In this document: positions 3,988 to 63,643 of the stretch, one piece after another
How the letters are laid out: the number at the start of each line of letters is the position of its first letter
Numbering within the stretch: position 1 is the first letter of the stretch
Virus record (IMG/VR): IMGVR_UViG_3300045996_002337
Coordinates: 124,001 to 188,000 of that record
DNA length: 64,000 nucleotides
Strand: one strand, 5' to 3'
Made by a program: the position numbers and the translations under genes
Notes under the pieces: generated by a model
Told to the model about the DNA's origin: nothing
The model's database searches: none
The model's input: only the letters and a program-made list of their open reading frames with translations

Positions 3988-4859
3988 TAGATAATCTCCA
4001 AAATTCGGTACTCGGTCACCATCGCGCTTCCGTAGCTACCAGACGTTCCTTGGTTCACCCCCATTGTAACGGCAGCTGTTGAGGTGTTGAGGTGTCCAAG
4101 GCGCGCGCTGAAGGTGATGGCCGCAGTTGAAGGGGCCGTATAAACCGCCTGCATAGCTAGGTTTTGAACACCGACTGCGAAGGTGGCGGCAGTGACCGCC
4201 TGATGTTGAACCACCATGCCGATGCATGTAGTCCCTGCAAACGCAGTAGAAAACAACGATCTAGCGGTGGCTGTGGTGTAGGCGCTGATCGTGAATTGAA
4301 TTACCAAGCTCGACCCTGTGACCAGCGGGGTGAATGACTGAGTCCAAATTTGAAAACCTTCGGTCGCAGTTGGTACAGTTGTTGTTGCCTTACCGGCCAC
4401 AGAGCTCGTCGTTGCATTGATCGGACCAGCTACCGACTGAATAACGCGGGCATATGGGAGCCACGCGCCATTTGAAAAGACCTCAGGCTCCAGCAACGTT
4501 GAATTGTATCGATGCTCACCCACAGAAGGCGTTAACGATCGCTGCGCAGTCGTGCCAACTGGTGGGACAAATCCTTCAGAGCCGGGCATAATGAGGTTTG
4601 GTGCCAAGCCGACCTGATGTCCGTTGATAGTTGTTTCGTTAGCTGTTTGAATGGGCGCAGAAACCAATATCCATGTGGAACCGTTATCTTGCCAAATCGT
4701 GTGGTTCGTGCTGTCGATAAAGAGCCGATTAGTTACGCCTGCTGTGGGGCGATTTGCAAGTGGGCCAGACAGCACGCTACCCACCTGACCTGTTAGGAGG
4801 GGCTCTCCATTAACGTCAGGGGTTTCCAAAAAAGAAAGCTTACCAAGATGGGTTGCCAT
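3987..4859 (-). CDS. Tail fibre/collar-like structural protein
   Basis: PVGTTAQR...GEHRYN motif shared with fibre proteins; C-terminal beta domain. Confidence 0.6.
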   Translation of the reverse strand: MATHLGKLSFLETPDVNGEPLLTGQVGSVLSGPLANRPTAGVTNRLFIDSTNHTIWQDNGSTWILVSAPIQTANETTINGHQVGLAPNLIMPGSEGFVPPVGTTAQRSLTPSVGEHRYNSTLLEPEVFSNGAWLPYARVIQSVAGPINATTSSVAGKATTTVPTATEGFQIWTQSFTPLVTGSSLVIQFTISAYTTATARSLFSTAFAGTTCIGMVVQHQAVTAATFAVGVQNLAMQAVYTAPSTAAITFSARLGHLNTSTAAVTMGVNQGTSGSYGSAMVTEYRILEII

Positions 4860-47129: not shown

Positions 47130-48620
47130 TTATGACAGTGTCACAGCATGACCCCAAAGCCCATCGATGTGATCTACGACAGCTACTGCGTCGTCCTCAT
47201 CGAGCGTGCGGCCAAGATACGGCTTGTACTTCAGGACAAGAGCGCGGTCGTCCTTAGGCGTTCCGATACCAGTAACCGCGATCTGCGGAACGTAGTTGAT
47301 TCGCTCCATGGACCGAGCCAGAGAATTACGGAGGTTTTGGTATCCCACATCGTCGTGAATCTCACTTACGAATGCGCTCGGATCTTCTTCTTCCTCGTCA
47401 TCTGGGTAATTCACCTTGACCGAGAACATCTTCATGTCTCGGATGACCTTCGGTGAAAGATACTGCGCCACGAAGCTGTCGTCGCGGTGCTCAAACGCTG
47501 CTTCCTTGACGGCATCCTGCCAACGCTTTCCAATTAGCTGGGGGAACCATTCACGGTCCTCATCCGTTGGATTTTCGCAGATGCGTTTCACGTCCATGAG
47601 AATGTTAAAGCCGAGGGCATACGGGTTAATGCCGCTGTACCAGCGCTTCGTGTACTCAGGTTGATAGATGACACCGCTGTGGTAGTTCAAGAACGAAATG
47701 AAGGCGTCAGGTGAAAGGAACCCCTTCTCCTCCAACCGGGTCATGATGTAGTAGTGTGTGAAGGTTGCAAAGCCTTCGTTCAGGTTCTTCGTCTGCCCCT
47801 GCGGGTAGAAGTATTGATTCACCTTGTACACGATCCGAAGAATTTCACGCTTCCACTGGGGCAGAGTAGACGAGTTCTTCATGATAAAGTAGAGAAGATT
47901 CTCTTCTTCCTCGATCTGGTCATCCTCATCATGATCAGAAAGGTCAACTTCCTTGAAGCTTGTTTTCTTCAAGATGATGTCCAGCTCACGCTGCTTAGCC
48001 TCTTCATCATCGAGCAGCTTCTTCAGTCGAGATTCCTCGCTCAACTTGGGCTGGTGCTTCCGCTTGAACTTGTCAACGCCGTGAGGGGCAATCGCGTGGG
48101 CAGCATCAAGAACTTCCTCGACCTCTTCCTCACCGTACCGGTCTTCGCATTGACGAATGTAATCGCGCGCGAAGATCATGTAGTCAACGATGGAGCCTGC
48201 ATTTGTCCACTGCTTGAAGCACTCGTTGTTCTTGAACACAGCGTTATGGCCGATGGCCGCGTGCGCAATCACCATCGTCTGCATGAGCATGTCGTTTTCC
48301 TCCATGAGGTACGAAATGCACGGGTTCGTGTTGATCACGATTTCATATGCAAGGCCTTGGTGGCCTTTCTCATAAGCGCGCGAGCTCTTGAGAAAGTCCT
48401 TACCAAAGGACCAGTGGTTGTAGTGGATCGGAAGACCGATTGAGCTGTACGCATCGAGCATCTGCTCAGCGGAGATGATTTCGATGGAGTTAGGGTAGAA
48501 GTCCACGCCGGGCTTCAGTTCCATCTCCTCCTCTGCAATCTTCTCAATCTCCTTATACATCCTCGCAATCAGATCTGGGGTCCAATCGGTACGTGATGTG
48601 ACATAGAGCGGTTCAGTCAT
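47130..48620 (-). CDS. ycgB: SpoVR/YcgB family protein
   Basis: GLPIHYNHWSFGK, LAYEIVIN, AHAAIGH, YFYPQGQTK..NEGFA, NPYALGF. Confidence 0.93.
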   Translation of the reverse strand: MTEPLYVTSRTDWTPDLIARMYKEIEKIAEEEMELKPGVDFYPNSIEIISAEQMLDAYSSIGLPIHYNHWSFGKDFLKSSRAYEKGHQGLAYEIVINTNPCISYLMEENDMLMQTMVIAHAAIGHNAVFKNNECFKQWTNAGSIVDYMIFARDYIRQCEDRYGEEEVEEVLDAAHAIAPHGVDKFKRKHQPKLSEESRLKKLLDDEEAKQRELDIILKKTSFKEVDLSDHDEDDQIEEEENLLYFIMKNSSTLPQWKREILRIVYKVNQYFYPQGQTKNLNEGFATFTHYYIMTRLEEKGFLSPDAFISFLNYHSGVIYQPEYTKRWYSGINPYALGFNILMDVKRICENPTDEDREWFPQLIGKRWQDAVKEAAFEHRDDSFVAQYLSPKVIRDMKMFSVKVNYPDDEEEEDPSAFVSEIHDDVGYQNLRNSLARSMERINYVPQIAVTGIGTPKDDRALVLKYKPYLGRTLDEDDAVAVVDHIDGLWGHAVTLS

Positions 48621-49978
48621 TTCTTACCTTTCTTCTTTCCATACAGCGACTTGAAGGCATCGAATACCTGCGCCTCATCAGCAATTTTAACACAAGCCAG
48701 CTTACGGTTAGTGTTAGAAATTGACATCATGACGTTCCACAGAGTGGGTGAACCGCCAAACGAAGCTGCAAAGTTTTGACCGACTTGAACATACACGGCA
48801 TGTCGCACCTTTGCGAGGAGGCCCTTAGTTTCAATTTCATCAATCACGTTTGCGTTATCATTGTCCCAGTTGTCACCGTCACCAGCATACGACAGGTAAA
48901 TGTTTGTCTGATTCGCATCATACCGTGACTTGATGATGTCATGCATCATTGCCCAGGCTGGTGAGACCGTCGTGCCACCACTCAAGCGCGTGGTGAAAAA
49001 CTCCTCTTCAGAGAGCTCGTGCGGCTCGTCAGTGTGAGCGATGAAGATCAGGTCAGTCGTCGGGTACTTACGCTTAATGAAGGCGTACTGTAGAGAGAAG
49101 AACTTGCGCGCCATCCGCTTCTTATCTTCATCCATCGACCCTGAAACGTCCATGATCATGCCAAGCACGGCGTCTGACGCCTTTACTTGAACCTTCTCAG
49201 ATTTACGGTAACGAAGATCAACATCCTCAAAAATCGGCATTGACGAGACCTTCTGCTTCAGCTCAGCGATGCGCAGCGCAACTTCCTGAACGCGAAGTGC
49301 CCATGCATCTACGCCTGCCTCATGCTCATGATCGTCGGCCATGAGCTCAGCCAGCTCAGCCTCAAGCTCAGCAAGTTCATCACGTGAGTCCTTTGTAAGA
49401 GCCAGTCGCCGCGCCTTTGAGTGCTTGAAGGACCGAATTACTGAAAGTTGCCCTGGGTTGCCGACCTTTTGGAAGCCTGCCCGTTGCATCTTGAATTCTG
49501 GCAGGTCCTTCTCGTGCGTTTCCTTCAGGTCTGGTAGTTCGCAGTCCTCAAAGAACACGTCAAAGAACTCAGAGCGCGAGATGTTGACGATGAAGTCATC
49601 TTCACCTTCTTCACCAGGGCCATTGCCGTTTCCACGACCACCTGATCCTCCGCTAGGGTTGATTGGAAATTCATCTCCCTTCAGCCAGTGATCGTTGCCA
49701 ATCAGGACGATTTCGCGCTCACCAATGTTTGGGTCGTAATGAAATGTCGGTTCGCTCAATGCGTGCCGCGCAACTTTAACCGGGTTCGTGTAGTTGCCGG
49801 CCCCCTGAGGGCCACCGGCTTTGCCCACGCCGCCAGCATCGATGTCTTCAGGCTTCGCATTCTTAATCGAATCCTTGACGCGCTTCAGCAACTTCTGTCG
49901 GTTATTCAGCGACTTTCCACGACCAGTCTTACGTCGATCGACGAAGATAAAGGTCGTGGAGGTAGGAGTGGTAGCCAT
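48617..49978 (-). CDS. yeaH: YeaH/YhbH (UPF0229) vWA protein
   Basis: KSLNNRQK, LSEPTF, MDVSGSM, SGGT, GDGDNW. Confidence 0.92.
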   Translation of the reverse strand: MATTPTSTTFIFVDRRKTGRGKSLNNRQKLLKRVKDSIKNAKPEDIDAGGVGKAGGPQGAGNYTNPVKVARHALSEPTFHYDPNIGEREIVLIGNDHWLKGDEFPINPSGGSGGRGNGNGPGEEGEDDFIVNISRSEFFDVFFEDCELPDLKETHEKDLPEFKMQRAGFQKVGNPGQLSVIRSFKHSKARRLALTKDSRDELAELEAELAELMADDHEHEAGVDAWALRVQEVALRIAELKQKVSSMPIFEDVDLRYRKSEKVQVKASDAVLGMIMDVSGSMDEDKKRMARKFFSLQYAFIKRKYPTTDLIFIAHTDEPHELSEEEFFTTRLSGGTTVSPAWAMMHDIIKSRYDANQTNIYLSYAGDGDNWDNDNANVIDEIETKGLLAKVRHAVYVQVGQNFAASFGGSPTLWNVMMSISNTNRKLACVKIADEAQVFDAFKSLYGKKKGKK

Positions 49979-49998
49979 TCCTAACCTCCTTTAGTTAA

Positions 49999-51963
49999 TT
50001 ACGACGACTTACGGTTGTTGGAAAACCAATTGACCAAGATTTGAACTTGGTGTGGGGTGTAACCCTTTTCAACCATACGCTCAACAAAACCGCGGTGCTT
50101 CTCTTCGGTTTCCTTGTCTTGCTTTGGACCGAAGGCAATCACTGGCATGATTTGCTCAGTGGCAGCGAACATGCGCTTTTCGATGACCGTCTTGATCTTT
50201 TCGTACTGGTCCCAGCGAGGCGACTTGCCTTCGTTCTTCGCCTTGTGACGGAGAACATAGTGCACGATGTCATTGCGGAAGTCCTTCGCGTTTGTAATCG
50301 CGGCGGCCTTTTCAATTTCCTCAAGCTTCTGATTCAGCGTGTCGCGGTTGAGAAGCTGATGTGTTTCGGGATCACGGGTCTGTTCATCATCGATCCATGC
50401 TGCAGCGAACTGAACATAACGTTCGAACATGTTCTGACCGAACGAGCTGTACGACTCAAGGTAGGCGGTGCGCAGTTCTTTCTCGAGGAACTCGAAATAG
50501 CGCGGTTGCAGGTGCGACTTGATGAAGTCAACGTAGCGCGTGAACTTCTCTTCAGGGAGAGCCTCCTTCTTGATCGCCTCTTCGATGACATACATCAGGT
50601 CGATCGGGTTCGCTTGGAACTCCTCTGGACGAAGGTCAAAGACCGACGACAGAACCTTGAAGGCAAAACGGGTCGACATGCCGTTCATTCCTTCATCAAC
50701 GCCAGCTGCATCGCGATACTCTTCGTACGGCTTGGCGTTCGGCATCGTGTCCTTAACGTTCTCGCCGTTGTACACACGAAGCTTGGCGTAGATCGTCGAG
50801 TTTTCCGGTTCCTTGAGACGCGTCAGAATCATCCACTGCGCAAGCATCTTCAACGTGCCGGGGGCGATCGGTGCCTTGCTGAGGCTGGAGCCGCTCAGCA
50901 TCTTCTCGTAGATCTTGATCTCCTCGTTCACGCGCAGGCAGTACGGCACATCAACGATAAAGACGCGGTCCAAGAAAGCTTCGTTCGTCTTGTTGTTCTT
51001 GAACGCGAACCATTCAGATTCGTTCGAGTGGGCGCAGATGATGCCGGTGTAAGGCATCGCGGGGATGGCTTCCGTGCCGTTGTAGTTGTGTTCTTGCGTT
51101 GCCATCAGGAGCGGGTTAAGCGTCTTGATGTTCGCCTTGAACATTTCAGCGAAGTCCATCAGGCCTTGGTTCGTGCGGTTCAAGCCACCGCTGTACGAGT
51201 ACGAGTACGGGTGATTCTGCGGGAACTTCTCCAGCTTGCGCAGGTCTGTCTTGCCGATCAGGACCGAAACGTCTTGGTTGTTCTCATCGCCTGGCTCGAC
51301 CTTCATGACGCCGATTTGGCGATCCTTATTAGGCCACAGCTTTACGACCGAGAAGCGGGTGATGTCGCCACCGAATTCCTGCAGCTTTTGCTGAGCCCAG
51401 CCAGAGAGAACAGTTTGGCCGATCAGGTTGCGCGGAATGCCGATTTCATTGACGAGCGCCATGTGATCTGCATCGTACTTGTCGAACAGGCCGAGCGGGC
51501 TTTCAAAGACTGGCGAGGTGGCCAGCTCAGGGTCCTTTTCGCTTGCATCGTGCAGCACGTAGATGGGGTGCTTCTCCATCAGCGATTTCAGGCGTTCGAC
51601 GAGTGAGGACTTACCACCACCGACTGGACCCTTGAGGTACAGGATCTGCTTGGATTCTTCCAGGCCGGCCGACGCGTGGCGGAAGTAGGCGGCAATGCGT
51701 TCGATGGTGTCTTCCATGCCGTGGAAGTCGTCGAAGCCTTGGTAAAGGCGGACCTTCTTGTTCGAGTGAATGCGCGAAAGGCGCGGATCCTCAGAGGTGT
51801 CAACGATGCGTGCATCGCCAATTGCTGCAACCATGCGCTCTGCAGCGGTTGCGTAGGCCATCTGGTCCGTCTTGCAGAGGTCCAGATATTGATCGAGGGT
51901 TAGAACCTCGGGCTTGGAAAACTTCTTCTCGAAAGAAGCCTTGAGAGATGACAAGGTGCTCAT
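49999..51963 (-). CDS. prkA: PrkA/YeaG AAA+ ATPase/serine kinase
   Basis: LEESKQILYLKGPVGGGKSS, EPGDENNQD, NQGLMDFAEMFK, AHSNESEW, PYCLR. Confidence 0.95.
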   Translation of the reverse strand: MSTLSSLKASFEKKFSKPEVLTLDQYLDLCKTDQMAYATAAERMVAAIGDARIVDTSEDPRLSRIHSNKKVRLYQGFDDFHGMEDTIERIAAYFRHASAGLEESKQILYLKGPVGGGKSSLVERLKSLMEKHPIYVLHDASEKDPELATSPVFESPLGLFDKYDADHMALVNEIGIPRNLIGQTVLSGWAQQKLQEFGGDITRFSVVKLWPNKDRQIGVMKVEPGDENNQDVSVLIGKTDLRKLEKFPQNHPYSYSYSGGLNRTNQGLMDFAEMFKANIKTLNPLLMATQEHNYNGTEAIPAMPYTGIICAHSNESEWFAFKNNKTNEAFLDRVFIVDVPYCLRVNEEIKIYEKMLSGSSLSKAPIAPGTLKMLAQWMILTRLKEPENSTIYAKLRVYNGENVKDTMPNAKPYEEYRDAAGVDEGMNGMSTRFAFKVLSSVFDLRPEEFQANPIDLMYVIEEAIKKEALPEEKFTRYVDFIKSHLQPRYFEFLEKELRTAYLESYSSFGQNMFERYVQFAAAWIDDEQTRDPETHQLLNRDTLNQKLEEIEKAAAITNAKDFRNDIVHYVLRHKAKNEGKSPRWDQYEKIKTVIEKRMFAATEQIMPVIAFGPKQDKETEEKHRGFVERMVEKGYTPHQVQILVNWFSNNRKSS

Positions 51964-53968: not shown

Positions 53969-54763
53969 TTAGCCCTGAACGATTGGCGCACCTTTAAACA
54001 GCGCCGCTACACCATCAGGTTGCTTAGACAGCCAGATGTCAAGCTGATCGATAAATGATCGTTCGACAGGTCCAGTTGGCCGGTGCTTTTCCGGAATCTT
54101 CGCGAGTTGATCTTCAGTCAGCATGCGTTCTTCGCGAACCCGGCGAGCGAACGTGCCGCGCTTGAAGAAATACGGATAGTCGTTGAAGTTGATCCCCACC
54201 TTGAAAAGCATCTCCTGCATCTCAGGTCCGCTCTTGTGCTGCAGTTCCTTGTGCGAGAACATAGATTGGGCCGCCATGGAGATGGCGTTCTTCGTTGCAT
54301 CCTGCTGGCGCCAAAGCACGCAGTTGTAGGCCTCAACGAGGTTAGGAACCACGAAGGCCCGAGCATCGAAGATTGGAAGCTGATCGGCCTTCTCAGGCAG
54401 GTGGAACTCGAGCTGCTTGTTGAAGTACGCGGTGGCGTAGGAAGCGCACAGCGACTCCATCTTCTGGATGCGCCCGTTGAACGGGTAGTCAGCGCTGGAG
54501 AACGAGTCCTCGTAGAAAACGAGGGTGATTTCATCCGACTGAGTGTAACCAACGATGGAACCCATGCGGTCAACCAGCGCCTTCATCGTCTCCACCATGA
54601 GGGCGCTCAGCCGTGTATCATATGGCCGCTTGAGCCCCTTGGTGAAGGTGTGAAAGGACTTGCCATCCAGTCGCACGATCAGCGGTTGTCCCTTGAATGC
54701 TTTTCGCGAGGTCGTAACGGCCTCGTAAGATTTCATCCGATCACCTAGGTCGTCCATGCTCAT
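53969..54763 (-). CDS. thg1: tRNA(His) guanylyltransferase Thg1-like 3'-5' polymerase
   Basis: RMKSYE, RLDGKSFH, YTQSDEI, FDARAF, WRQQDA.KNAIS. Confidence 0.92.
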   Translation of the reverse strand: MSMDDLGDRMKSYEAVTTSRKAFKGQPLIVRLDGKSFHTFTKGLKRPYDTRLSALMVETMKALVDRMGSIVGYTQSDEITLVFYEDSFSSADYPFNGRIQKMESLCASYATAYFNKQLEFHLPEKADQLPIFDARAFVVPNLVEAYNCVLWRQQDATKNAISMAAQSMFSHKELQHKSGPEMQEMLFKVGINFNDYPYFFKRGTFARRVREERMLTEDQLAKIPEKHRPTGPVERSFIDQLDIWLSKQPDGVAALFKGAPIVQG

Positions 54764-55005
54764 TTCTCCACTCCACATTTAATGCCCACTGCGGCGATTC
54801 CGGCAGTGCCATTCCATTCATTTCTGATTTTTGGGGCCAATCCACCACCTTCAGATACTAGGTAAACGTAGCCGTCGTAGCAAACTTCATTAAGATTGAT
54901 AACAGGCCTGGCAGCCGCCACCTTTGTTACCAGGTGCGCATCTTCATTTTTCTGACCACACGCCACTAGCATCAGAGCTGCAACCACAGAAATTACGCGT
55001 TTCAT
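54760..55005 (-). CDS. Putative lipoprotein
   Basis: MKRVISVVAALMLVAC. Confidence 0.6.
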   Translation of the reverse strand: MKRVISVVAALMLVACGQKNEDAHLVTKVAAARPVINLNEVCYDGYVYLVSEGGGLAPKIRNEWNGTAGIAAVGIKCGVEK

Positions 55006-56394: not shown

Positions 56395-56665
56395 TTGCGG
56401 CTCTCTTTGCGGCTCGTTTTTCCATGATCGGGCCTTCGAGGTTATCAGCCACGAAGTCGGCGAAGGAGTGTAGAAGCTTGCGCGTAGCTTCTGGACCCAT
56501 CATTTCCGTGCCGCACGACCACTTCTCATGATTGTAGTGAAAGGACAGCTGTCCAAAACCGCAGCCCTTCCAACTCCAATCAAAGTAAGCACTGGCTGAA
56601 TGCACACCCTCGCAGGTAGGAGGGTTGTCCTTCATTGATGCAGAAAATAGGTCATTGATAAACAT
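56372..56665 (-). CDS. Hypothetical protein
   Basis: About 97 aa. Confidence 0.5.
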   Translation of the reverse strand: MFINDLFSASMKDNPPTCEGVHSASAYFDWSWKGCGFGQLSFHYNHEKWSCGTEMMGPEATRKLLHSFADFVADNLEGPIMEKRAAKRAANEETEKR

Positions 56666-57206
56666 TCCAATCAAAAGTTGAACCAAAAACGGGTGGCGTG
56701 CCAGCTCTCAAATCATCTCGAGCGCGCATCAGCATGTGTCCAAGCCAATTCGTTCCTCGCCACTGCGACTTGTCAAAGATTCGCTCATCTAGATGCTCCA
56801 AACCGACACCCCATTTCGTGTCGAGCGGTGAAGCTTCTACGATGATTTTATCACATGTCGAGAGCAAAAGATCACGCTCTTTAGCGTTCTGTTCAAATTT
56901 CGCGTAGACGCCTGGATACGTTAAATCGCGGGCGGCGCCGTCCCATACTGCGTCCGAGTAACCTTGAATTGAACGGCCAATGGCTTTCTGTTTGCGAGGA
57001 TCTGAAGTTGCCATAACACGCGTCGCGGCGTCTGCATCCTTAAACAGATCAGCCTTGACGCGCATCATGTATTGCTCTGACGTGTTGTACCGCTCAAAAG
57101 CACCGTCAATCTCAGCTTGCGCGGTAAATCCGATCTTCGCCCAATTGGAGAGGATGCCGCCCCAAAAGTAGACGCCAGTCTCGGTTTCAAGTTCCCATGT
57201 TTTCAT
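56652..57206 (-). CDS. NADAR (YbiA-like) hydrolase
   Basis: LSNW, SEQYMM..KA.LF.D, PRKQKAIGR, AKFEQN, EASPLD..WGVG, NWLG..LM. Confidence 0.92.
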   Translation of the reverse strand: MKTWELETETGVYFWGGILSNWAKIGFTAQAEIDGAFERYNTSEQYMMRVKADLFKDADAATRVMATSDPRKQKAIGRSIQGYSDAVWDGAARDLTYPGVYAKFEQNAKERDLLLSTCDKIIVEASPLDTKWGVGLEHLDERIFDKSQWRGTNWLGHMLMRARDDLRAGTPPVFGSTFDWNVYQ

Positions 57207-57224
57207 CTTTTCTTTCTCTTTCAA

Positions 57225-57248
57225 GAAGAGGCTCCTAGGAGCCTCTTC
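57225..57248. terminator. Hairpin downstream of Ro60
   Basis: gaagaggctc(c)/(g)gagcctcttc. Confidence 0.55.
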
Positions 57249-57252
57249 ACCT

Positions 57253-58881
57253 TTACAGGTTGGCGATGATCTGCGGTGCAGCTGAGTCGAAGCCTGCAAT
57301 GTCCAGCATCCCACCGTCCTTCGGATCAGCGATCGTGAATTCCGATACCGAGGTACCGATCACGATGGACTTCGCGAAGACGCCCGCCTTCTGACGGTAC
57401 TTCTTCAGTGCCTGCACTGGGGCTTGGCCGCCGGCGTAGGTTTCATTGTCCGTGATGATGACGAACTTGTCGACCGGGATGTTGTGCGCCGTAGCGTACT
57501 CGAAGGTCTTCGCGCAATCGGTTGAACCACCGGACCAGTGCATGTCACGCATTGCCTTGAGCGCTGCGTCGAGGCGCATCGTCGGGCTGATCATCAGCGG
57601 CTCGATGTTGTGCTTGAAGCCAACGATGAAGTGGTTCGGCTGGTTACGAACTGCTGCCATCGCCATCACTGCCGCAACTTCCGCTGCATAGAGGTTCGGC
57701 GAACCGTTGACCGTTGCCCCCGTCATCGAACCAGAGATGTCCACACCGACCATGTAGTTCTCGTCAGTGGTCTTCGACGTTGCGAAGGCTGCGTAGAACG
57801 CGTCATCGAGAGCCGACACGATCTTCTGGTCCGGAGACCAGGTCATCGAGCCACGTTCGCCATGACCAGCCGAGTACTGCTTCATCGCCTGCAGGATCGT
57901 GATCGGGTGAACACGACCGCGCTTCAGCGCTTCGGTATCGAGGAGCTTCGACACGACCAGCTTCGAGCCTTCCGACATCGGAGCAATCACGCCGTGAGAC
58001 GTCAGAGCACCGAGCTTACGGATCAGAGCCGTCATGCCCATGTTACGCGCGAGCGCGAACAGAACATCCTTGTCCTTCAGGAACTGCGTTGGCACCATTT
58101 CCCACGTGAGCAGGTCAGAGCCTTCGATCAGCTTGAGAACGGTCTTCTTGTCGTCAGCACGCTTCAGGTACTCGAAGTCAACGAGGACTTGCGGAACAGC
58201 GGCACCTTCTGGCAGCTCGCCCTTCACGGAGTAACGGAAGAGGTTCGATTGGATTTCAGACGATGGCTTGACGTGCGCCAGACGCAGAACGTCACGGTGC
58301 GCCCAGCCATTACGCTGCTGGTACTTCAGGAGCTGAACTGCCAGCTTGTCGACCGTCTTCGTGGTGTACCATGCGGCAACGCCACGCTTTGCAGCTGCGT
58401 TCCACTTGCCCAGCGAGTCGAGGATCGAGACGAACAGGAACAGCCACGTACCCGTACGAGCGACCTTTGGAAGGGCTTCGTACGCAGCTGCAACAGTCTG
58501 TGGGTCGCCGTAGACAGCAGCAATGGCCAGGGCTACAACGGCTGGGTCGTTCTTCGGTGCACGGCCCGCCAGCGAGTACTCGACGACGCGAGCAACCACA
58601 CGGAGACCATCTTCCTTCAGACACTTCTTGACGGTGTCGAACGACTTCGCGGTCGTTTCCTTCGCACCGACGTAGTAACCAGCTGATTCAGAACCGATCA
58701 TGAGGAAGCGGTCAAGCACGCCCCAATGGTCCATCGTGAACGTGAAGCCGCCCGCGTTGTTCAGCTTCATGTCAGCTTCGCGGCCAGGAATTGGCTGAGT
58801 CTGTGGCGTCGACACCTTGGCGGTGACCTTTGCCTTCGTGGAAGTCGAGGACGCGTGGTTCGTGTAGTTCGAAGATGACAT
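57253..58881 (-). CDS. rsr: Ro60/TROVE RNA-binding protein with vWA domain
   Basis: NNAGG, LDRFL.IGSE..YY, RTGT.LF.F, KYQQRNGW.HRD.LR..H, LIRKLG, DISGSM, TDNET, AGFD. Confidence 0.95.
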   Translation of the reverse strand: MSSSNYTNHASSTSTKAKVTAKVSTPQTQPIPGREADMKLNNAGGFTFTMDHWGVLDRFLMIGSESAGYYVGAKETTAKSFDTVKKCLKEDGLRVVARVVEYSLAGRAPKNDPAVVALAIAAVYGDPQTVAAAYEALPKVARTGTWLFLFVSILDSLGKWNAAAKRGVAAWYTTKTVDKLAVQLLKYQQRNGWAHRDVLRLAHVKPSSEIQSNLFRYSVKGELPEGAAVPQVLVDFEYLKRADDKKTVLKLIEGSDLLTWEMVPTQFLKDKDVLFALARNMGMTALIRKLGALTSHGVIAPMSEGSKLVVSKLLDTEALKRGRVHPITILQAMKQYSAGHGERGSMTWSPDQKIVSALDDAFYAAFATSKTTDENYMVGVDISGSMTGATVNGSPNLYAAEVAAVMAMAAVRNQPNHFIVGFKHNIEPLMISPTMRLDAALKAMRDMHWSGGSTDCAKTFEYATAHNIPVDKFVIITDNETYAGGQAPVQALKKYRQKAGVFAKSIVIGTSVSEFTIADPKDGGMLDIAGFDSAAPQIIANL

Positions 58882-58925
58882 GGTATTTCCTTTCAACGTT
58901 ACGGCTGCGCATGCAGCAAAAGAGA

Positions 58926-59235
58926 TCAACTCACTGACAAACAAAAGATGCAATTGGAACTTCAGGCCTCACTCTACGCTCAAAATTCCTTACGGCATGA
59001 GTTTCGAGTGCTCCCTACATCGGGCTTATTTCTGGGTGCGCCGATGACCTGCAAGGTTACGGTCCTTGAACAACAGCGAATTTTCGGATCGCTGCAATCT
59101 TATCCATCGTATCGCATGATGGCGGGCGTCTGATTTTCAGGCTTCTCTTTCAACTCGCGAAGAAAGATCAGATTCTCGGATTACAGAGTCACATGTAGTG
59201 GATAACCAATACGCGACGGTTTGTCAGTGGGTTGA
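58926..59235 (-). ncRNA. Candidate structured ncRNA (Ro60-associated) in the rsr leader
   Basis: 16/17-bp terminal helix plus nested helices; no credible ORF over most of it. Confidence 0.5.
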
Positions 59236-59442
59236 GTTTGAATTAGACCTAGAGAAAAGAGCGACAAATGATGGTGACGAAGTGGAGGTTCTGCTTTCGC
59301 TTTGCTCCGATGTTCCCAAAGGGAACCCTTTTCAGTTTGAAGATAATCGTCGACCGTTCGGTCACTTAGTTCTTTGCAGACCTTGTTAAGCTGGTCTGCT
59401 AATTGCGCTACAAGTTCTGTTGCAGCATCAATTTATATATGT

Positions 59443-59471
59443 ATTGTAAGCAGTTTGTGCGCGTTTGGACA
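59443..59471 (-). promoter_or_regulatory. Promoter TGTCCA-N17-TACAAT, followed by late-like TATAAATT
   Basis: Seen directly; defines a leader of about 550 nt. Confidence 0.6.
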
Positions 59472-59485
59472 CCTTTTTACGTAGG

Positions 59486-60031
59486 TTAAAGGTCCCTGGC
59501 GTAAAACAGGCCGTTAACCATTGCAAAGGTCTTTGTGTCGTCCTTTGGGAAAAGAGGGATTCCACGACCATCAAGACACGCAAGTGAATGATAGAAGTAC
59601 TTTTCTTCCTGACTTGTCTGCGGATCCATTACAACGATCCATTCGTGGATGTCCACGTCGCCGAAACGGCCGACAATTTCTTCAGAGCAGTCAGCTACCT
59701 CTGAGATACCCGCGACGCCGAGCGTCTCAAGTGCCTGCGCATGTTCTTCTGTTCCAACTTTAATCTCGCCGTTGCTAAGCGCATCATCAAGGTTGTTGAT
59801 GCCGAGTCGCATGTGTTCGGCTTCAAGATCTTCTTGTGTGATCACGGTTCCAAGATAAACCGCGGCAAGAGTAATGCTCGCGTAGTACGTGATGATCCCA
59901 AGCGGAATTAGAAAGATCGTGTACCAGAATGGAAGATTGAAGACGACAAGCAGGGTCGCAAGAACCATGCCAAGTGCCCACGTCTTTCGAACCCGCTCCA
60001 TCGTGGAGACAATACGCTGTTGTACGTTCAT
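59486..60031 (-). CDS. Membrane-anchored hypothetical protein
   Basis: Two TM helices plus acidic domain. Confidence 0.6.
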   Translation of the reverse strand: MNVQQRIVSTMERVRKTWALGMVLATLLVVFNLPFWYTIFLIPLGIITYYASITLAAVYLGTVITQEDLEAEHMRLGINNLDDALSNGEIKVGTEEHAQALETLGVAGISEVADCSEEIVGRFGDVDIHEWIVVMDPQTSQEEKYFYHSLACLDGRGIPLFPKDDTKTFAMVNGLFYARDL

Positions 60032-60047
60032 GATTTCCAATCGTTGT

Positions 60048-60209
60048 TTACCACACACCAATCACGTGCAACAGGACGATGCTGTTAAGCACGAGAGCGA
60101 TCATCGCACACACGGTCCTGATCACCTCCATGCGGTGGCTCCAGAGCTTTTTTCGCTTTCGCTCTGAAGCCTTCTCCGCTTTTTCCTGCTCAGTCATCGC
60201 CCGTGTCAT
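60048..60209 (-). CDS. Small membrane protein (53 aa)
   Basis: Manual translation MTRAMTEQEK...VCAMIALVLNSIVLLHVIGVW. Confidence 0.55.
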   Translation of the reverse strand: MTRAMTEQEKAEKASERKRKKLWSHRMEVIRTVCAMIALVLNSIVLLHVIGVW

Positions 60210-60802
60210 TAGTGCCCTCTTGCACGGATGTCATCCCAAACACGCGAATGTGTTGGAATAAAACCACACAGGTATTCCATCTGGCACGCGAGAACGTTTC
60301 GGTTCTCGAGAATCAGCGCTTCAGCCCAGTTCGGGGCGTACGGCACGTACAGGAGCTTCATGCCACATTCTTCCAGAAGCTGGTCATCCTTGTCATGGTT
60401 GCAGTCAAGGCACGCTGTGACAACGTTGGTCCACACGTCCTTGCCGCCGCGAGAAGTCGGGATCACGTGGTCGCGAGACAAGTGAGAATCACGGAACAGT
60501 CGGCCACAGTAAGCGCACAGCATGCGGTCACGGCGGAACAGTTCCGGGTTCGTCAGGGTCGGCGTCTTGTTCATCCGCTTTGCGGCACCTGGCGACTTTC
60601 CCTTGATAGCGATAATCGGAGCAGTTGTGATTCGCGACTGCGTGCCAGTCAAGCGGTTATCTCCACCACGGAAAAGAATGTCGCCCTCGCCTTCACCAAG
60701 CTGCCATGCAACAAGGTTCTTGGCGTGGTAAACGATTGCGTCCTGGTGGGAGCACCATTCCTTCGGTTGGCCCGAAGCGTCGAGTGTCAAAATTCTGCTC
60801 AT
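60209..60802 (-). CDS. HNH endonuclease
   Basis: RRDRMLCAYCG...DHVIPTSRGG...NVVTAC..CN..K. Confidence 0.9.
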   Translation of the reverse strand: MSRILTLDASGQPKEWCSHQDAIVYHAKNLVAWQLGEGEGDILFRGGDNRLTGTQSRITTAPIIAIKGKSPGAAKRMNKTPTLTNPELFRRDRMLCAYCGRLFRDSHLSRDHVIPTSRGGKDVWTNVVTACLDCNHDKDDQLLEECGMKLLYVPYAPNWAEALILENRNVLACQMEYLCGFIPTHSRVWDDIRARGH

Positions 60803-61254
60803 GATTTCCTCAAGATTTCTTCTAAGCGTTCCACGTATTTCACGTGGTCCTTGCGACCTTTTTGTTTGAAACTATCTAACGACATCCAAGTTGTGAACTC
60901 TGTCTCGTCACACCACTTGTCAAAGTCATACTTGTCCATGATCTCAACACCAAACACCGCGAGATCATAGGTGCCAGAATGAAGGGTCACCCTTTCATCT
61001 GCAATCTCAAACAACGGAAGACGCATGTTCCGTTGTTTGAAGCCAAGTTCTTCTTCAGCTTCACGAATCGCCGCCTGGAGCTTTGTCTCGCCTGGCTCGA
61101 TTTTCCCTTTCGAGATCATCGGACGTGGCCCGCCGAAACGGGGATCTGAGCTGACCATCATCAAATAACGGTATTGACCGTCATCTGCCTTCATGTAGGG
61201 GATGAGACCTGCTCGAGCCCGTTTTTCGTATCCAGTTTCGTCAATGTTGTGCAT
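60799..61254 (-). CDS. Nudix hydrolase
   Basis: Nudix box GKIEPGETKLQAAIREAEEELG; TATAAT-N6-ATG. Confidence 0.88.
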   Translation of the reverse strand: MHNIDETGYEKRARAGLIPYMKADDGQYRYLMMVSSDPRFGGPRPMISKGKIEPGETKLQAAIREAEEELGFKQRNMRLPLFEIADERVTLHSGTYDLAVFGVEIMDKYDFDKWCDETEFTTWMSLDSFKQKGRKDHVKYVERLEEILRKS

Positions 61255-61260
61255 GAAGCA

Positions 61261-61289
61261 ATTATAACCTGAAAAACCCGCTCTGTAAA
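61261..61289 (-). promoter_or_regulatory. Promoter TTTACA-N17-TATAAT
   Basis: Near-consensus sigma70. Confidence 0.75.
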
Positions 61290-61295
61290 CAAAAA

Positions 61296-61323
61296 CGGGG
61301 TCCTGCTTGTGAACAGGACCCCG
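61296..61323 (-). terminator. Intrinsic terminator
   Basis: cggggtcctg/caggaccccg followed by T5. Confidence 0.75.
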
Positions 61324-61426
61324 ACTTGCTATTAAGAGTGCTGTTCTTTTTAACGTAAGCGCGCGTCCATGCCCCAGGCATGAAACCCGGTGCATACCTC
61401 ATTCAATTTGATTGTTGGTTGTGTGT

Positions 61427-62095: not shown

Positions 62096-62782
62096 TCACT
62101 TTGGAAGGCGTCGATTTTCAGGTAGTACGTCACGGAAATAAATTTCAGTGCTGATGTTCAAAGTTTCACCTTTGATCGAATCTAACTCCTGCGGGGTTGG
62201 AACACGGTTCAAGGAAACGGTAATGTACCCCGAGAACTGTCCGTAGTACGGTGGCAGACTTGTTCTACAGACATACGGAAACCTGTTTCCTAGCCCAGGA
62301 AACAACGATGCATTACCACCCTCGTTATACGCCGAGCAGGCAAACTCGCCATTGATGACCCCGACAATGCTCTCGTTGTTCTTCTCGTCAGACGTAAAGA
62401 GAGGAATGCCACCGTAGCGTCCATTGAACAGCGTCTCTAGCTGGCGCTGCACTGATGCATCATCAGAGTACCATTGAATCGGCAAGCGCCGGTTGTTTCG
62501 AATGTCCGCGTTCAGAACCGTGATTGCAATCACCGCATCATCGACATCAACCAAATGTTTGATTCGCGCCTTAGATGTATCTGACATGGTGAATGTCGTT
62601 ACTTGAGGCGTGTCACCTTCTGGCCCATTGACAATGTAATTGACAATCACCGTGCGGTTTTCAAAGATGGTGTAGCCGATCAGTGCCACTAGAGCGGCAA
62701 AGGTCCAAATCGCCACGTTCTTCAACGAGATGACGCGAATTACCTTTGCCGCAAGTGAGAACAGCCGGTCTTGAATGGCCAT
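62096..62782 (-). CDS. T4 holin T-like protein (paralog 1)
   Basis: Single TM plus periplasmic GAF-like domain ending CRTSLPP..GQFSGYITV...L..I. Confidence 0.5.
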   Translation of the reverse strand: MAIQDRLFSLAAKVIRVISLKNVAIWTFAALVALIGYTIFENRTVIVNYIVNGPEGDTPQVTTFTMSDTSKARIKHLVDVDDAVIAITVLNADIRNNRRLPIQWYSDDASVQRQLETLFNGRYGGIPLFTSDEKNNESIVGVINGEFACSAYNEGGNASLFPGLGNRFPYVCRTSLPPYYGQFSGYITVSLNRVPTPQELDSIKGETLNISTEIYFRDVLPENRRLPK

Positions 62783-62854: not shown

Positions 62855-63643
62855 TCATTGGGGCTTTTTTGTGACGTCGTTTAGATAAATTTCTACCGCC
62901 AAACGTGAGACTTCTAGTCGAATCGTGTCCAATTCTTGCTTTGTTAGCTGCTGACTCATCCCCACCGAAACGAAGCCGACAAACTGCCCCACGAATGGAG
63001 GGATCGCTAAGCGACAAATCGTGGGCAGTTTGCCGGCCAAGTCAGGTGCAAAACGAAAATAGATGGTGTCCTTGTAGTTGTCACACTTGAATTCATTTCC
63101 CAGGATAGCAACCATTTGAGCCGTGTTTTTTGCGTCATAATCAAACACCGCACGAGGCAAAGAAAGGGCAGATGTTATCTCTGGCGTGATAGCGACTGAG
63201 GCGTCATCGATGTAGTAGTAACGTACGACCCTGCGATTTTTCTTAAGGTCAACCTCAGAGACGCTTACGAAGGAAACGTTTGTTGATTTTGCTAAATTTT
63301 GGAGTGCTGTTTTGCTCGCCTCAGATAATTCCCAGGATGTGACGACTGGCTCGGCGGCGATGGGTGGTTGCACGAGCTTCTCGACGATGGTGAGCCGATT
63401 CTCATATAGCGAGAATAAAATCAACCCAATAATGGTGAGAAGACCGATGAGCGCAACCCGCTTGAACGTAAGCGTATCAATCAGGTCCTCAATGAAGGTT
63501 AAAACCTTTTCCTTGTCTACTTTTGGCGCGGCTGGGGCAGGAGTGGCCTCTGGTTCTGGCGAAGGTTTTGGGGCGGGAAGTTGATCTCCTTCCATTTCGG
63601 GTGCCCGAACTTCTTGATCGCTGAGAGATTTTTTGCTAGGCAT
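62855..63643 (-). CDS. T4 holin T-like protein (paralog 2)
   Basis: Same architecture; YENR, NRR, CRLAIPP..GQFVGFVSV. Confidence 0.5.
   Translation of the reverse strand: MPSKKSLSDQEVRAPEMEGDQLPAPKPSPEPEATPAPAAPKVDKEKVLTFIEDLIDTLTFKRVALIGLLTIIGLILFSLYENRLTIVEKLVQPPIAAEPVVTSWELSEASKTALQNLAKSTNVSFVSVSEVDLKKNRRVVRYYYIDDASVAITPEITSALSLPRAVFDYDAKNTAQMVAILGNEFKCDNYKDTIYFRFAPDLAGKLPTICRLAIPPFVGQFVGFVSVGMSQQLTKQELDTIRLEVSRLAVEIYLNDVTKKPQ

Follow-up and report, generated by a model that had tools for sequence, protein, structure and literature searches.

Probable tandem Y RNAs and an operator-like hairpin in the leader of a phage Ro60 gene

The virus record IMGVR_UViG_3300045996_002337 is a phage-like contig of 349,660 bp, of which we analysed positions 124,001 to 188,000, a stretch of 64,000 nt that is called here the window and to which all coordinates refer. 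On its minus strand lies a gene for the RNA-binding protein Ro60 (Rsr), the product of which carries the Pfam domains TROVE and vWA_Ro60 (2e-50) and matches, in the PDB, Rsr of D. radiodurans (2NVO, 3e-102) and Ro60 of Xenopus (1YVP, 6e-96); the protein is a canonical Ro60. The gene is separated by an untranslated gap of 604 nt (58882-59485) from the preceding open reading frame (ORF) of 191 aa, which ends at 59486. In this leader the original prediction, made from the sequence alone, had placed a multi-branched RNA of roughly 310 nt, regarded either as an unusually large Y-like RNA or as an autoregulatory leader binding Ro60. We found that the leader holds two RNAs closed by stems of the Y type, the smaller of which had been overlooked, and a short hairpin beside the ribosome-binding site. 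We consider it likely that the whole is a small non-coding RNA operon, in which tandem Y RNAs are followed by an operator-like hairpin and then by the Ro60 coding sequence. From 5' to 3' on the transcribed strand, the features are:

59434-59449, minus strand: promoter-like box TTACAATACATATATA, formed by a -10-like TACAAT and then the conserved CATATATA
59376-59426, minus strand: two 5' leader hairpins, GCUGCAA/UUGUAGC (59426-59407) and GCAGACC/GGUCUGC (59399-59376)
59261-59365, minus strand: Y RNA 1, 105 nt, the upstream member of the tandem pair
58926-59236, minus strand: Y RNA 2, 311 nt, with Y-type closing stems and a multi-branched inner domain of ~250 nt
58902-58921, minus strand: hairpin 3, UUUU-GCUGC-AUGC-GCAGC-CG (5-bp hairpin at 58917-58904)
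57253-58881, minus strand: Ro60 (Rsr) gene, 542 aa

Retrieval guided by Ro60 yielded 38 viral loci, and a homologue of the element was found in 33 of the 36 usable ones by iterative nhmmer seeded by the window leader alone. By nhmmer together with scans of genomes and metagenomes, the family of the large RNA came to 71 loci with 48 distinct versions, and in all 71 the element stands directly upstream of a Ro60 gene whose product is at least 53% identical to that of the window. These loci are on phage-like contigs, several of 257-376 kb. Moreover, in a 15-mer scan of viral contigs that was blind to Ro60, about 112 of the 118 matches were due to chance, and the true elements adjoined Ro60 in six cases out of six. 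When 50,697 phage records were searched with the leader by blastn, no match was found, and the closest Ro60 proteins of cultured phages are less than 40% identical to the window protein. Complete elements of the phage type were also observed in two contigs filed under bacteria, L160 (NZ_JAZQPV010000081.1, a metagenome-assembled genome, MAG, named 'Acinetobacter sp.') and L161 (an Oscillatoriales MAG), with Ro60 proteins 75% and 70% identical to that of the window, respectively; they are most likely mis-binned phage contigs or derived from prophages, and hence weak hints to the host.

The large RNA of the original prediction was borne out, and the complementarities listed for it are all present in the window at the positions given. 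Y RNA 2, which measures 258-457 nt in its relatives, has helices that are kept by compensatory changes across the 48 distinct versions. Its parts, all on the minus strand, are:

59235-59219 / 58942-58926, minus strand: lower stem P1, with 5' strand UCAAC (59235-31) and CACUGACAAAC (59229-19)
59218 and 59217, minus strand: P1 junction, bulged C and G; the partner strand 58943-58926 reads U, GUUUGUCAGUG, GUUGA
59214-59206 / 58957-58950, minus strand: upper stem P2, GCG-U-AUUGG with CCAAU-UGC
59205-01, minus strand: loop motif UUAUC, directly after the 5' strand of P2
58949-43, minus strand: 3' side of P2, unpaired AUCUU, then UU
59172-67 / 59134-29, minus strand: helix P4, UCUGAU/AUCAGA
59104-59122, minus strand: hairpin P5, CCAUC/GAUGG, then the conserved linker GAUAA(G) at 59104-59100
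59094-74, minus strand: hairpin Ha, CAGCGA/UCGCUG
59068-52, minus strand: hairpin Hb, CAAGG/CCUUG
59045-19, minus strand: hairpin Hc, AUCGG/CCGAU, then conserved GUAGG
58958-59016, minus strand: variable arm P7, with AGG/CCU, CACUC/GAGUG, CUCA/UGAG and a CC-GUAA-GG tip

The free minimum free energy (MFE) fold of positions 58920-59240 (minus strand) recovered the terminal helix, at -96.1 kcal/mol (z = -2.8 against dinucleotide shuffles), and a fold constrained to the supported helices was near-optimal (-99.2 vs -103.8 kcal/mol for the free MFE). A MAFFT alignment of the whole RNA, with 711 mostly gapped columns, was unusable, and the single helices were examined instead by anchored tests; for P1, P2, P4 and P7 the support comes from energy-based comparisons between loci and from our own pair counts, with a few anchors misregistered. 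In 26 relatives, the two arms of P1 and P2 paired with a mean of -36.9 kcal/mol when taken from the same locus and of -18.3 kcal/mol when taken from different loci, and the own partner was the best one in 21 of them, despite completely different sequences. Over 41 distinct sequences, P1 was paired in 79% of cases vs 53% after shuffling, and each of the top five pairs of P2 was formed in 33-41, with G.C/A.U and U.G/U.A/C.G exchanges. On the terminal helix and its extension, both proposed earlier, the cross-locus arm test and the P1 pair counts agree.

Inside these stems, P4 was also stronger with its own partner (self -9.1 vs cross -5.65 kcal/mol, 12 loci). It encloses a near-invariant block of 20 nt (59159-59140), which in most relatives folds as a tetraloop mini-hairpin, GUU-GAAA-GAC, containing an internal loop AA/AA; in the window, one position of the mini-hairpin is G where the relatives have C. 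RNAalifold on the P3-P5 region returned the invariant mini-hairpin only, owing to misalignment. At the site of P5 we recognised by eye stems of other sequence, CCGC/GCGG in L011 and CCAUU/AAUGG in L025. The three hairpins Ha, Hb and Hc, already noticed as CAGCGA, CAAGG and AUCGG/CCGAU, were all recovered by RNAalifold, with double-sided compensatory changes in 14 of their 15 pairs; 84% of the alignment cells were paired vs 61% after shuffling, and the covariation score of 0.67 (vs 0.27) was reached by none of 500 shuffles, the slid controls giving at most 0.18. The relatives have two to four hairpins of this kind, with GAUAGUUGC-like linkers between them.

The arm P7, of 22 to ~86 nt in the relatives, is followed by GAAGUU, which is conserved and single-stranded (consensus GAAUCU). 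The helix that closes the arm, AGG (59016-14) with CCU (58966-64), stands directly after GGUGUA and directly before GAAU, and it covaries (self -6.06 vs cross -3.13 kcal/mol, 24 loci). The CACUC/GAGUG stem and the CC-GUAA-GG loop described at first fall within this variable arm, where the part backed by covariation is the closing helix. Two other pairings of the original prediction did not find support: CAGGUC/GGCCUG competes with the closing helix of P7 and is without counterpart in L011, L005 and L035 (an automated test with unreliable anchors gave self -2.8 vs cross -2.4 kcal/mol), and UUAUCCA/UGGAUAA joins two near-invariant motifs, with one compensatory case (L031) vs at least five disruptive ones. 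Two further candidates were dropped, namely UCUUUC/GAAAGA within P4, present in the window only and missing from the relatives, and a long-range pairing of GUGAC (after UUAUC) with GUUAC (before Hc), which overlaps Hc and is inconsistent across loci.

The closing stems of Y RNA 2 bear the signature of Y RNAs. At the P1/P2 junction, the 5' strand N-C-C-G and the 3' strand U-U-Y-G-N' are invariant: in all of the 41 distinct sequences a pair joins the first C to G, leaving a single bulged C, after which come a G.U pair and, on the 3' strand, 3-6 extra bases. P2 ends with GG/CC and is followed by UUAUC, the resulting GGUUAUC or GAUUAUC being near-invariant in the family (in the window at 59346-42 and 59205-01 for the two RNAs). 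The lower stem, the bulged C and UUAUC have been reported as hallmarks shared by Y RNAs and stem-bulge RNAs (sbRNAs) (PMC4726728; 10.1101/312249), and in PMC7012775 the 5' arm of human Y4 is printed with the CCG-N9-GGUUAUC spacing that the phage modules also have. Most loci have two instances per leader of the motif CCG-N8-10-GGUUAUC, which is absent from all of ~110 unrelated loci, and the window has three instances of ACCG-N8-10-GRTTATC where 0.06 would be expected, the Y RNA modules accounting for two. The third match, ACCG-N-GATTATC at 3990-4009 (minus strand), is at the junction of two ORFs, is not supported by the covariance model R1 described below and is probably due to chance.

The features expected of a Ro60 site (a conserved, CCGA-like 5' strand, the bulged C and unpaired bases opposite; PMC4726728; PMC4201824) are thus all present at the level of sequence and secondary structure, and both RNAs have their ends paired in a long stem with a lower and an upper part. 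As for the size of Y RNAs, 100 ± 20 nt, Y RNA 1 lies within this range with its 105 nt and Y RNA 2 outside it with 311 nt; the typical size of bacterial Y RNAs had been given correctly, and the large RNA is about threefold above it. The description as an unusually large Y-like RNA holds, since the closing stems carry the defining Y features across 41-48 distinct relatives, always beside Ro60. By its stems, Y RNA 2 is a predicted member of the Y RNA family taken broadly, with sbRNA-like small bacterial Y RNAs counted in.

Y RNA 1 is of canonical size and consists of the following parts:

59365-61 / 59265-61, minus strand: lower stem GUGAC/GUCGC, with bulged C 59360, then G.U and A.U pairs
59355-47 / 59280-73, minus strand: upper stem GGU(C)GACGA/UCGUCACC
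59346-42, minus strand: UUAUC of the loop, which also holds a hairpin GGUUCCC/GGGAAC

In relatives the core of Y RNA 1 has 54-137 nt. In 12 minimal members, its structure of 16 pairs was formed in 87.5% of cases vs 69% after shuffling, eight of the nine pairs of the upper stem changed on both sides, and the covariation of 0.58 (vs 0.22) was reached by 0 of 500 shuffles. The covariance model R1 was built from 12 phage Y RNA 1 members only. It finds Y RNA 1 in phage loci outside the seed and, with filters off, it delimited in the window leader exactly 59261-59365 (13.9 bits, E 0.005). Near cellular Ro60 genes, R1 gave 19 matches directly upstream, all on the plus strand, the same as Ro60, in at least eight phyla or orders (among them Gemmatimonadota, Acidimicrobiales, Myxococcota, Abditibacteriaceae, Deinococcus and Mesorhizobium), and in 41 further metagenome loci it gave 26 matches, again all on the plus strand. 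The model finds unannotated Y RNAs beside Ro60 genes in many phyla and metagenomes. In the window, both Y RNA modules share the strand of Ro60 and stand 21-485 nt upstream of it, an arrangement that recurs in the 71 loci, and the GGGCCG(A/G)-N8-GGUUAUC arm of the phage Y RNAs is also present in the actinophage and cellular Ro60 loci retrieved.

The likeness extends to the Rfam model of nematode sbRNAs, RF01656 (ceN72-3/ceN74-2), which covered the Y RNA 1 of L021 end-to-end with 37.0 bits (E 6e-4; gathering score 38) and gave 30.4 bits on that of L036. Three bacterial RNAs that immediately precede Ro60 genes (L171 2207-2337, L165 2298-2362 and L163 1094-1163) exceeded the gathering score of the same model, a cross-kingdom match by which annotation pipelines would mislabel such RNAs.

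The top of the upper stem, UUGG/CCGA, is common to both phage modules, and for this reason Y RNA 1 and Y RNA 2 are paralogues, of which the second has gained an insert of ~250 nt in its loop. At loci with a Ro60 less than 50% identical to that of the window, the large domain is missing and the small Y modules are kept, sometimes in arrays of up to nine; among the sequences compared, the large inner domain is restricted to one Ro60 clade. Such arrays, made of tandem CCG-N8-10-GGUUAUC Y-like units, were observed upstream of Ro60 in the metagenome loci L253, L257, L252, L225 and L233, with up to eight copies in L253 and nine in L257; many of the units were confirmed by R1 and all are on the Ro60 strand.

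The third element of the leader, hairpin 3, lies upstream of the Ro60 start, at a distance of 8 nt from the Shine-Dalgarno sequence GAAAGGAAA (58894-85) and of 21 nt from the AUG (58881). It is present in 31 distinct relatives with the Shine-Dalgarno sequence 4-10 nt downstream, its pairs are formed in 92.9% of cases vs 70.6% after shuffling, and three of the five covary (C.G/U.A; G.C/A.U; C.G/U.A/A.U/G.C). Its flanks U-U-Y-G and C-C-G make it a loop-capped copy of the lower-stem junction of the Y RNAs; unlike a complete Ro60 site, it is circularly permuted and has no upper stem. Position and junction copy together suggest a feedback control of Ro60. The idea of an autoregulatory leader binding Ro60, put forward in the original prediction for the large RNA, may also hold in part, for hairpin 3, which is a different piece of the leader. 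In one sub-clade (L014 2750-2954, L015 2625-2951 and L012), an insert of ~200 nt, with an ORF of 108-115 aa in it, separates Y RNA 2 from hairpin 3, and the latter stays beside the Ro60 ribosome-binding site.

Similar hairpins ending in ...GGGC-CG(G/A) were noticed at the Shine-Dalgarno sequence, 10-25 nt upstream of Ro60 starts, in L162, L167, L170, L171, L173, L168 and L158 (cellular loci of Myxococcota and Nocardia, and Streptomyces-phage loci). L162 reads GCCCG..CGGGC-CGGAG-N8-AUG, and in the Myxococcota form the hairpin overlaps the ribosome-binding site GGAG. Structures like hairpin 3 may represent a general Ro60 operator; in a crude test their enrichment before cellular Ro60 genes was not significant, the background in GC-rich genomes being 17-33% of control ORFs.

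At the 5' end of the leader, the box at 59449-59434 is probably the start of the transcript and a putative promoter. The TAnAAT-nCATATATA form of the box is kept in the closest relatives, L002, L003 and L029, and only one similar site was found elsewhere in the window. It has no canonical -35 element, and the claim of an early-type promoter found no backing, a simple sigma-70 scan having missed the box. The stems of both 5' leader hairpins show compensatory changes in L002 and L029 and are confined to the closest relatives.

Taking these elements together, both RNAs would be transcribed along with Ro60, or immediately before it, from the box at 59449-59434 and cut from a precursor, as reported for YrlA and YrlB of M. 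smegmatis, which are processed from one precursor (PMC4201824). Ro60 would bind the outer surface of each lower stem. Y RNA 1 (105 nt) might act as the usual gate or tether; in Y RNA 2, the ~250-nt domain of 6-7 helices would take the place of the short loop, or of YrlA's tRNA-like module, and with its invariant GAAA-tetraloop hairpin and its row of hairpins it could serve as a module for effector binding. Such a module would dock Ro60 onto a clade-specific partner, either an exoribonuclease of the host, for instance PNPase, or a protein of the phage, for RNA surveillance or repair during infection, which would fit the Thg1-like, NADAR and Nudix neighbours of the locus. Hairpin 3 would expose a Ro60 site whose CCG strand runs into the Shine-Dalgarno sequence, and for this reason surplus free Ro60 could repress its own translation. 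That Y RNA 2 founds a class of 'giant Y RNAs' recruiting a new effector, and that hairpin 3 is the Ro60 operator, we propose only tentatively.

Several observations weigh against the reading of the leader as a Y RNA operon. No intrinsic terminator is found between the RNAs and Ro60. The Rfam Y-type models (RF00019 and RF01656) have no match in the window even at E = 10, the R1 match to Y RNA 1 is weak (13.9 bits) and the stems of Y RNA 2 come without a covariance-model score, owing to the large insert. Moreover, Y RNA 2 is ~3x as long as usual Y RNAs, and the phage upper stem does not have the GUG/CAC motif of vertebrate Y RNAs. Finally, the binding of Ro60 and the identity of the effector are purely deduced, and for the operator role of hairpin 3 the arguments are only the recurrence of a motif and its position.

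Some of these observations would be accommodated if the leader acted purely in cis, with Y-like modules that are never released and only provide Ro60 sites on the Ro60 mRNA for autoregulation of its translation or stability. Such a leader would explain why neither a terminator nor any recognisable signal for processing separates the modules from the coding sequence, why the position directly upstream is constant, and why one leader has three copies of the Ro60-site junction, the last of them ~10 nt from the Shine-Dalgarno sequence. However, the cellular and phage relatives of Y RNA 1 number from 1 to 9 and are sometimes downstream of Ro60, which is typical of separate RNA genes, the Y RNAs characterised by experiment in this location are stable products of processing (PMC4201824), and an autoregulatory site needs no conserved multi-helix domain of 250 nt. 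We therefore regard a purely cis-acting leader as unlikely.

Even less credit can be given to a leader whose structure has nothing to do with the binding of Ro60 (for example a riboswitch, thermosensor, mRNA stabiliser or other class of large structured RNA) and whose linkage to Ro60 in this phage clade is incidental, which appears very improbable. It is true that the inner domain (P4, the GAAA hairpin, Ha-Hc and P7) has no counterpart in known Y RNAs or in Rfam, and that the element is large and multi-branched as are some leaders that bind ligands or proteins. Against this, the closing stems hold every sequence hallmark of a Ro60 site, and the same stems, without the large domain, adjoin Ro60 genes across phyla. 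Nor did the element match other large or structured RNAs: no match was found with the Rfam models of ROOL, GOLLD, OLE, HEARO, raiA, tRNA, tmRNA, RNase P, group I/II introns and riboswitches. At the gathering score the whole window gave zero Rfam matches, and at E up to 10 the leader gave noise only, consisting of a CRISPR-DR63-like hairpin (59309-59342) and a few fragments of long non-coding RNAs and miRNAs. The Rfam blank is weak evidence against the Y RNA nature of the leader, since in three actinophage Ro60 loci, used as a positive control, Rfam found no Y-type family; there R1 also found nothing, and Y-like arms are visible by eye.

A tRNA-like RNA of the YrlA type was ruled out for Y RNA 2, which has no tRNA-like arms: ARAGORN found nothing in the window, with neither T- nor D-arm, and the Rfam tRNA model had no match on the leaders of the window and of nine relatives, even in E-value mode. 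The earlier statement that the RNA matches neither tRNA, tmRNA and RNase P nor introns was thereby upheld by both Rfam and ARAGORN. In some relatives the loop of Hb reads NUCGAAN, which is not conserved; in the window it is ACCGUAA. Beside cellular Ro60 genes, some matches of the same tRNA model have a length of 120-140 nt and are probably YrlA-type, tRNA-like Y RNAs. As a separate observation, Ro60 genes of Myxococcota and Deinococcales are found within dense arrays of tRNA genes (L162, L167, L170, L175, L176 and L178).

A chance fold or an unannotated gene for a small protein, hinted at by opposite-strand ORFs of 55-63 aa and, in some relatives, by ORFs of 90-115 aa overlapping the region, is effectively refuted by covariation, the conservation being one of paired compensatory changes and variable-length arms rather than of codons, with conserved G.U pairs compatible only with the Ro60 strand, where no ORF of at least 40 aa is found in 58912-59428.

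In a wider comparison, the phage modules share with metazoan Y RNAs (RF00019) and nematode sbRNAs a lower stem in which one C is bulged within ...CCG(A), the U-U-G opposite with extra unpaired bases, an upper stem of ~9 bp and a loop starting with UUAUC. Unlike these, they are encoded by phages in the leader of Ro60 and not by Pol III genes, and they have no oligo-U tail and no GUG/CAC. Like YrlA, YrlB and Yrn1 of D. radiodurans, they are located beside rsr, on the same strand and often in pairs (PMC4201824; 10.1101/312249). They also resemble bacterial Y RNAs in their modular design (10.1101/312249), in which a stem binding Ro60 is joined to an effector module, and in a 5' motif resembling GNCGAA or GGUCCGA (PMC4201824). 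Unlike YrlA, the module of Y RNA 2 is not tRNA-like but has ~250 nt, 6-7 helices and its own invariant motifs.

The closest phage precedent is that of Thermus phage phiLo, in which two Y-like RNAs with a CGAA-type motif, Yrl1 and Yrl2, lie directly upstream of the phage Ro60 and bind both this protein and the host PNPase (PMC12135203). The phiLo RNAs are described there as Y-sized stem-bulge-stem RNAs, and the passages searched make no mention of a large multi-branched module or of a hairpin on the side of the ribosome-binding site. The phiLo Ro60 is distant from that of the window (E 5e-5, vs 1e-96 to 1e-102 for the Xenopus and Deinococcus proteins). By its stems the large RNA of the window is of a kind already known; its conserved domain of ~250 nt is new.

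Y RNAs are thought to be modular adaptors, in which Ro60 is held by a stem that stays constant, the partner being selected by a module that varies. The partners known are PNPase in Deinococcus and, for YrlA, a tRNA-binding factor that is still unknown, and to our knowledge few effector modules of Y RNAs have been described. The phage clade would offer a third one, much larger and strongly conserved, with 48 natural variants available for structure modelling; the presence of a minimal Y RNA beside the large one in the same transcript unit provides a built-in comparison. If the proposal for the giant Y RNA domain is true, it would lead to a new phage-encoded particle for RNA surveillance or repair. 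Moreover, the phage stems stand nearer to the Y RNAs of animals and to sbRNAs than was thought of the stems of the published bacterial YrlA family, and this likeness (bulged C, spacing and UUAUC) is relevant to the debate on whether Y RNAs have a common origin.

Autoregulatory operators in mRNAs mimic the primary RNA target of the protein, as in the case of ribosomal-protein operators. Similarly, hairpin 3 repeats the Ro60-site junction of the Y RNAs beside the Shine-Dalgarno sequence, and it offers a testable hypothesis of how the level of Ro60 could be matched to that of the Y RNAs. In the literature searched, translational autoregulation of Ro60 was not reported; if true, the hairpin 3 operator would be the first case described for this protein, and perhaps a widespread one.

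As for the neighbouring genes, the Ro60 locus is flanked by genes for a Thg1-like enzyme that repairs tRNA 5' ends, for a protein with a NADAR domain, for an HNH endonuclease and for a Nudix hydrolase, and the neighbourhood looks like a setting for RNA or nucleotide repair. As a group, these genes are at:

53969-54778, 56652-57314, 60209-60802 and 60799-61395, minus strand: Ro60-flanking genes (Thg1-like, NADAR, HNH and Nudix group)

In most loci, for instance L019, L021 and L025, the Y RNAs are preceded by a member of a family of ~190-aa proteins (in the window at 59486-60061, minus strand), often present as two or three tandem paralogues. The window protein of 191 aa belongs to no Pfam or PHROG family and gave no convincing lead in the ESM Atlas; the family is a candidate partner for the large RNA. 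Farther upstream, two adjacent paralogous genes (62096-62782 and 62855-63643, both minus strand) match phrog_31287, of unknown function. On the other side, at 48617-51963 (minus strand), a PrkA-type AAA/serine kinase (654 aa) is encoded beside a DUF444 protein (453 aa), a pair that constitutes a bacterial stress module and is unusual for a phage genome.

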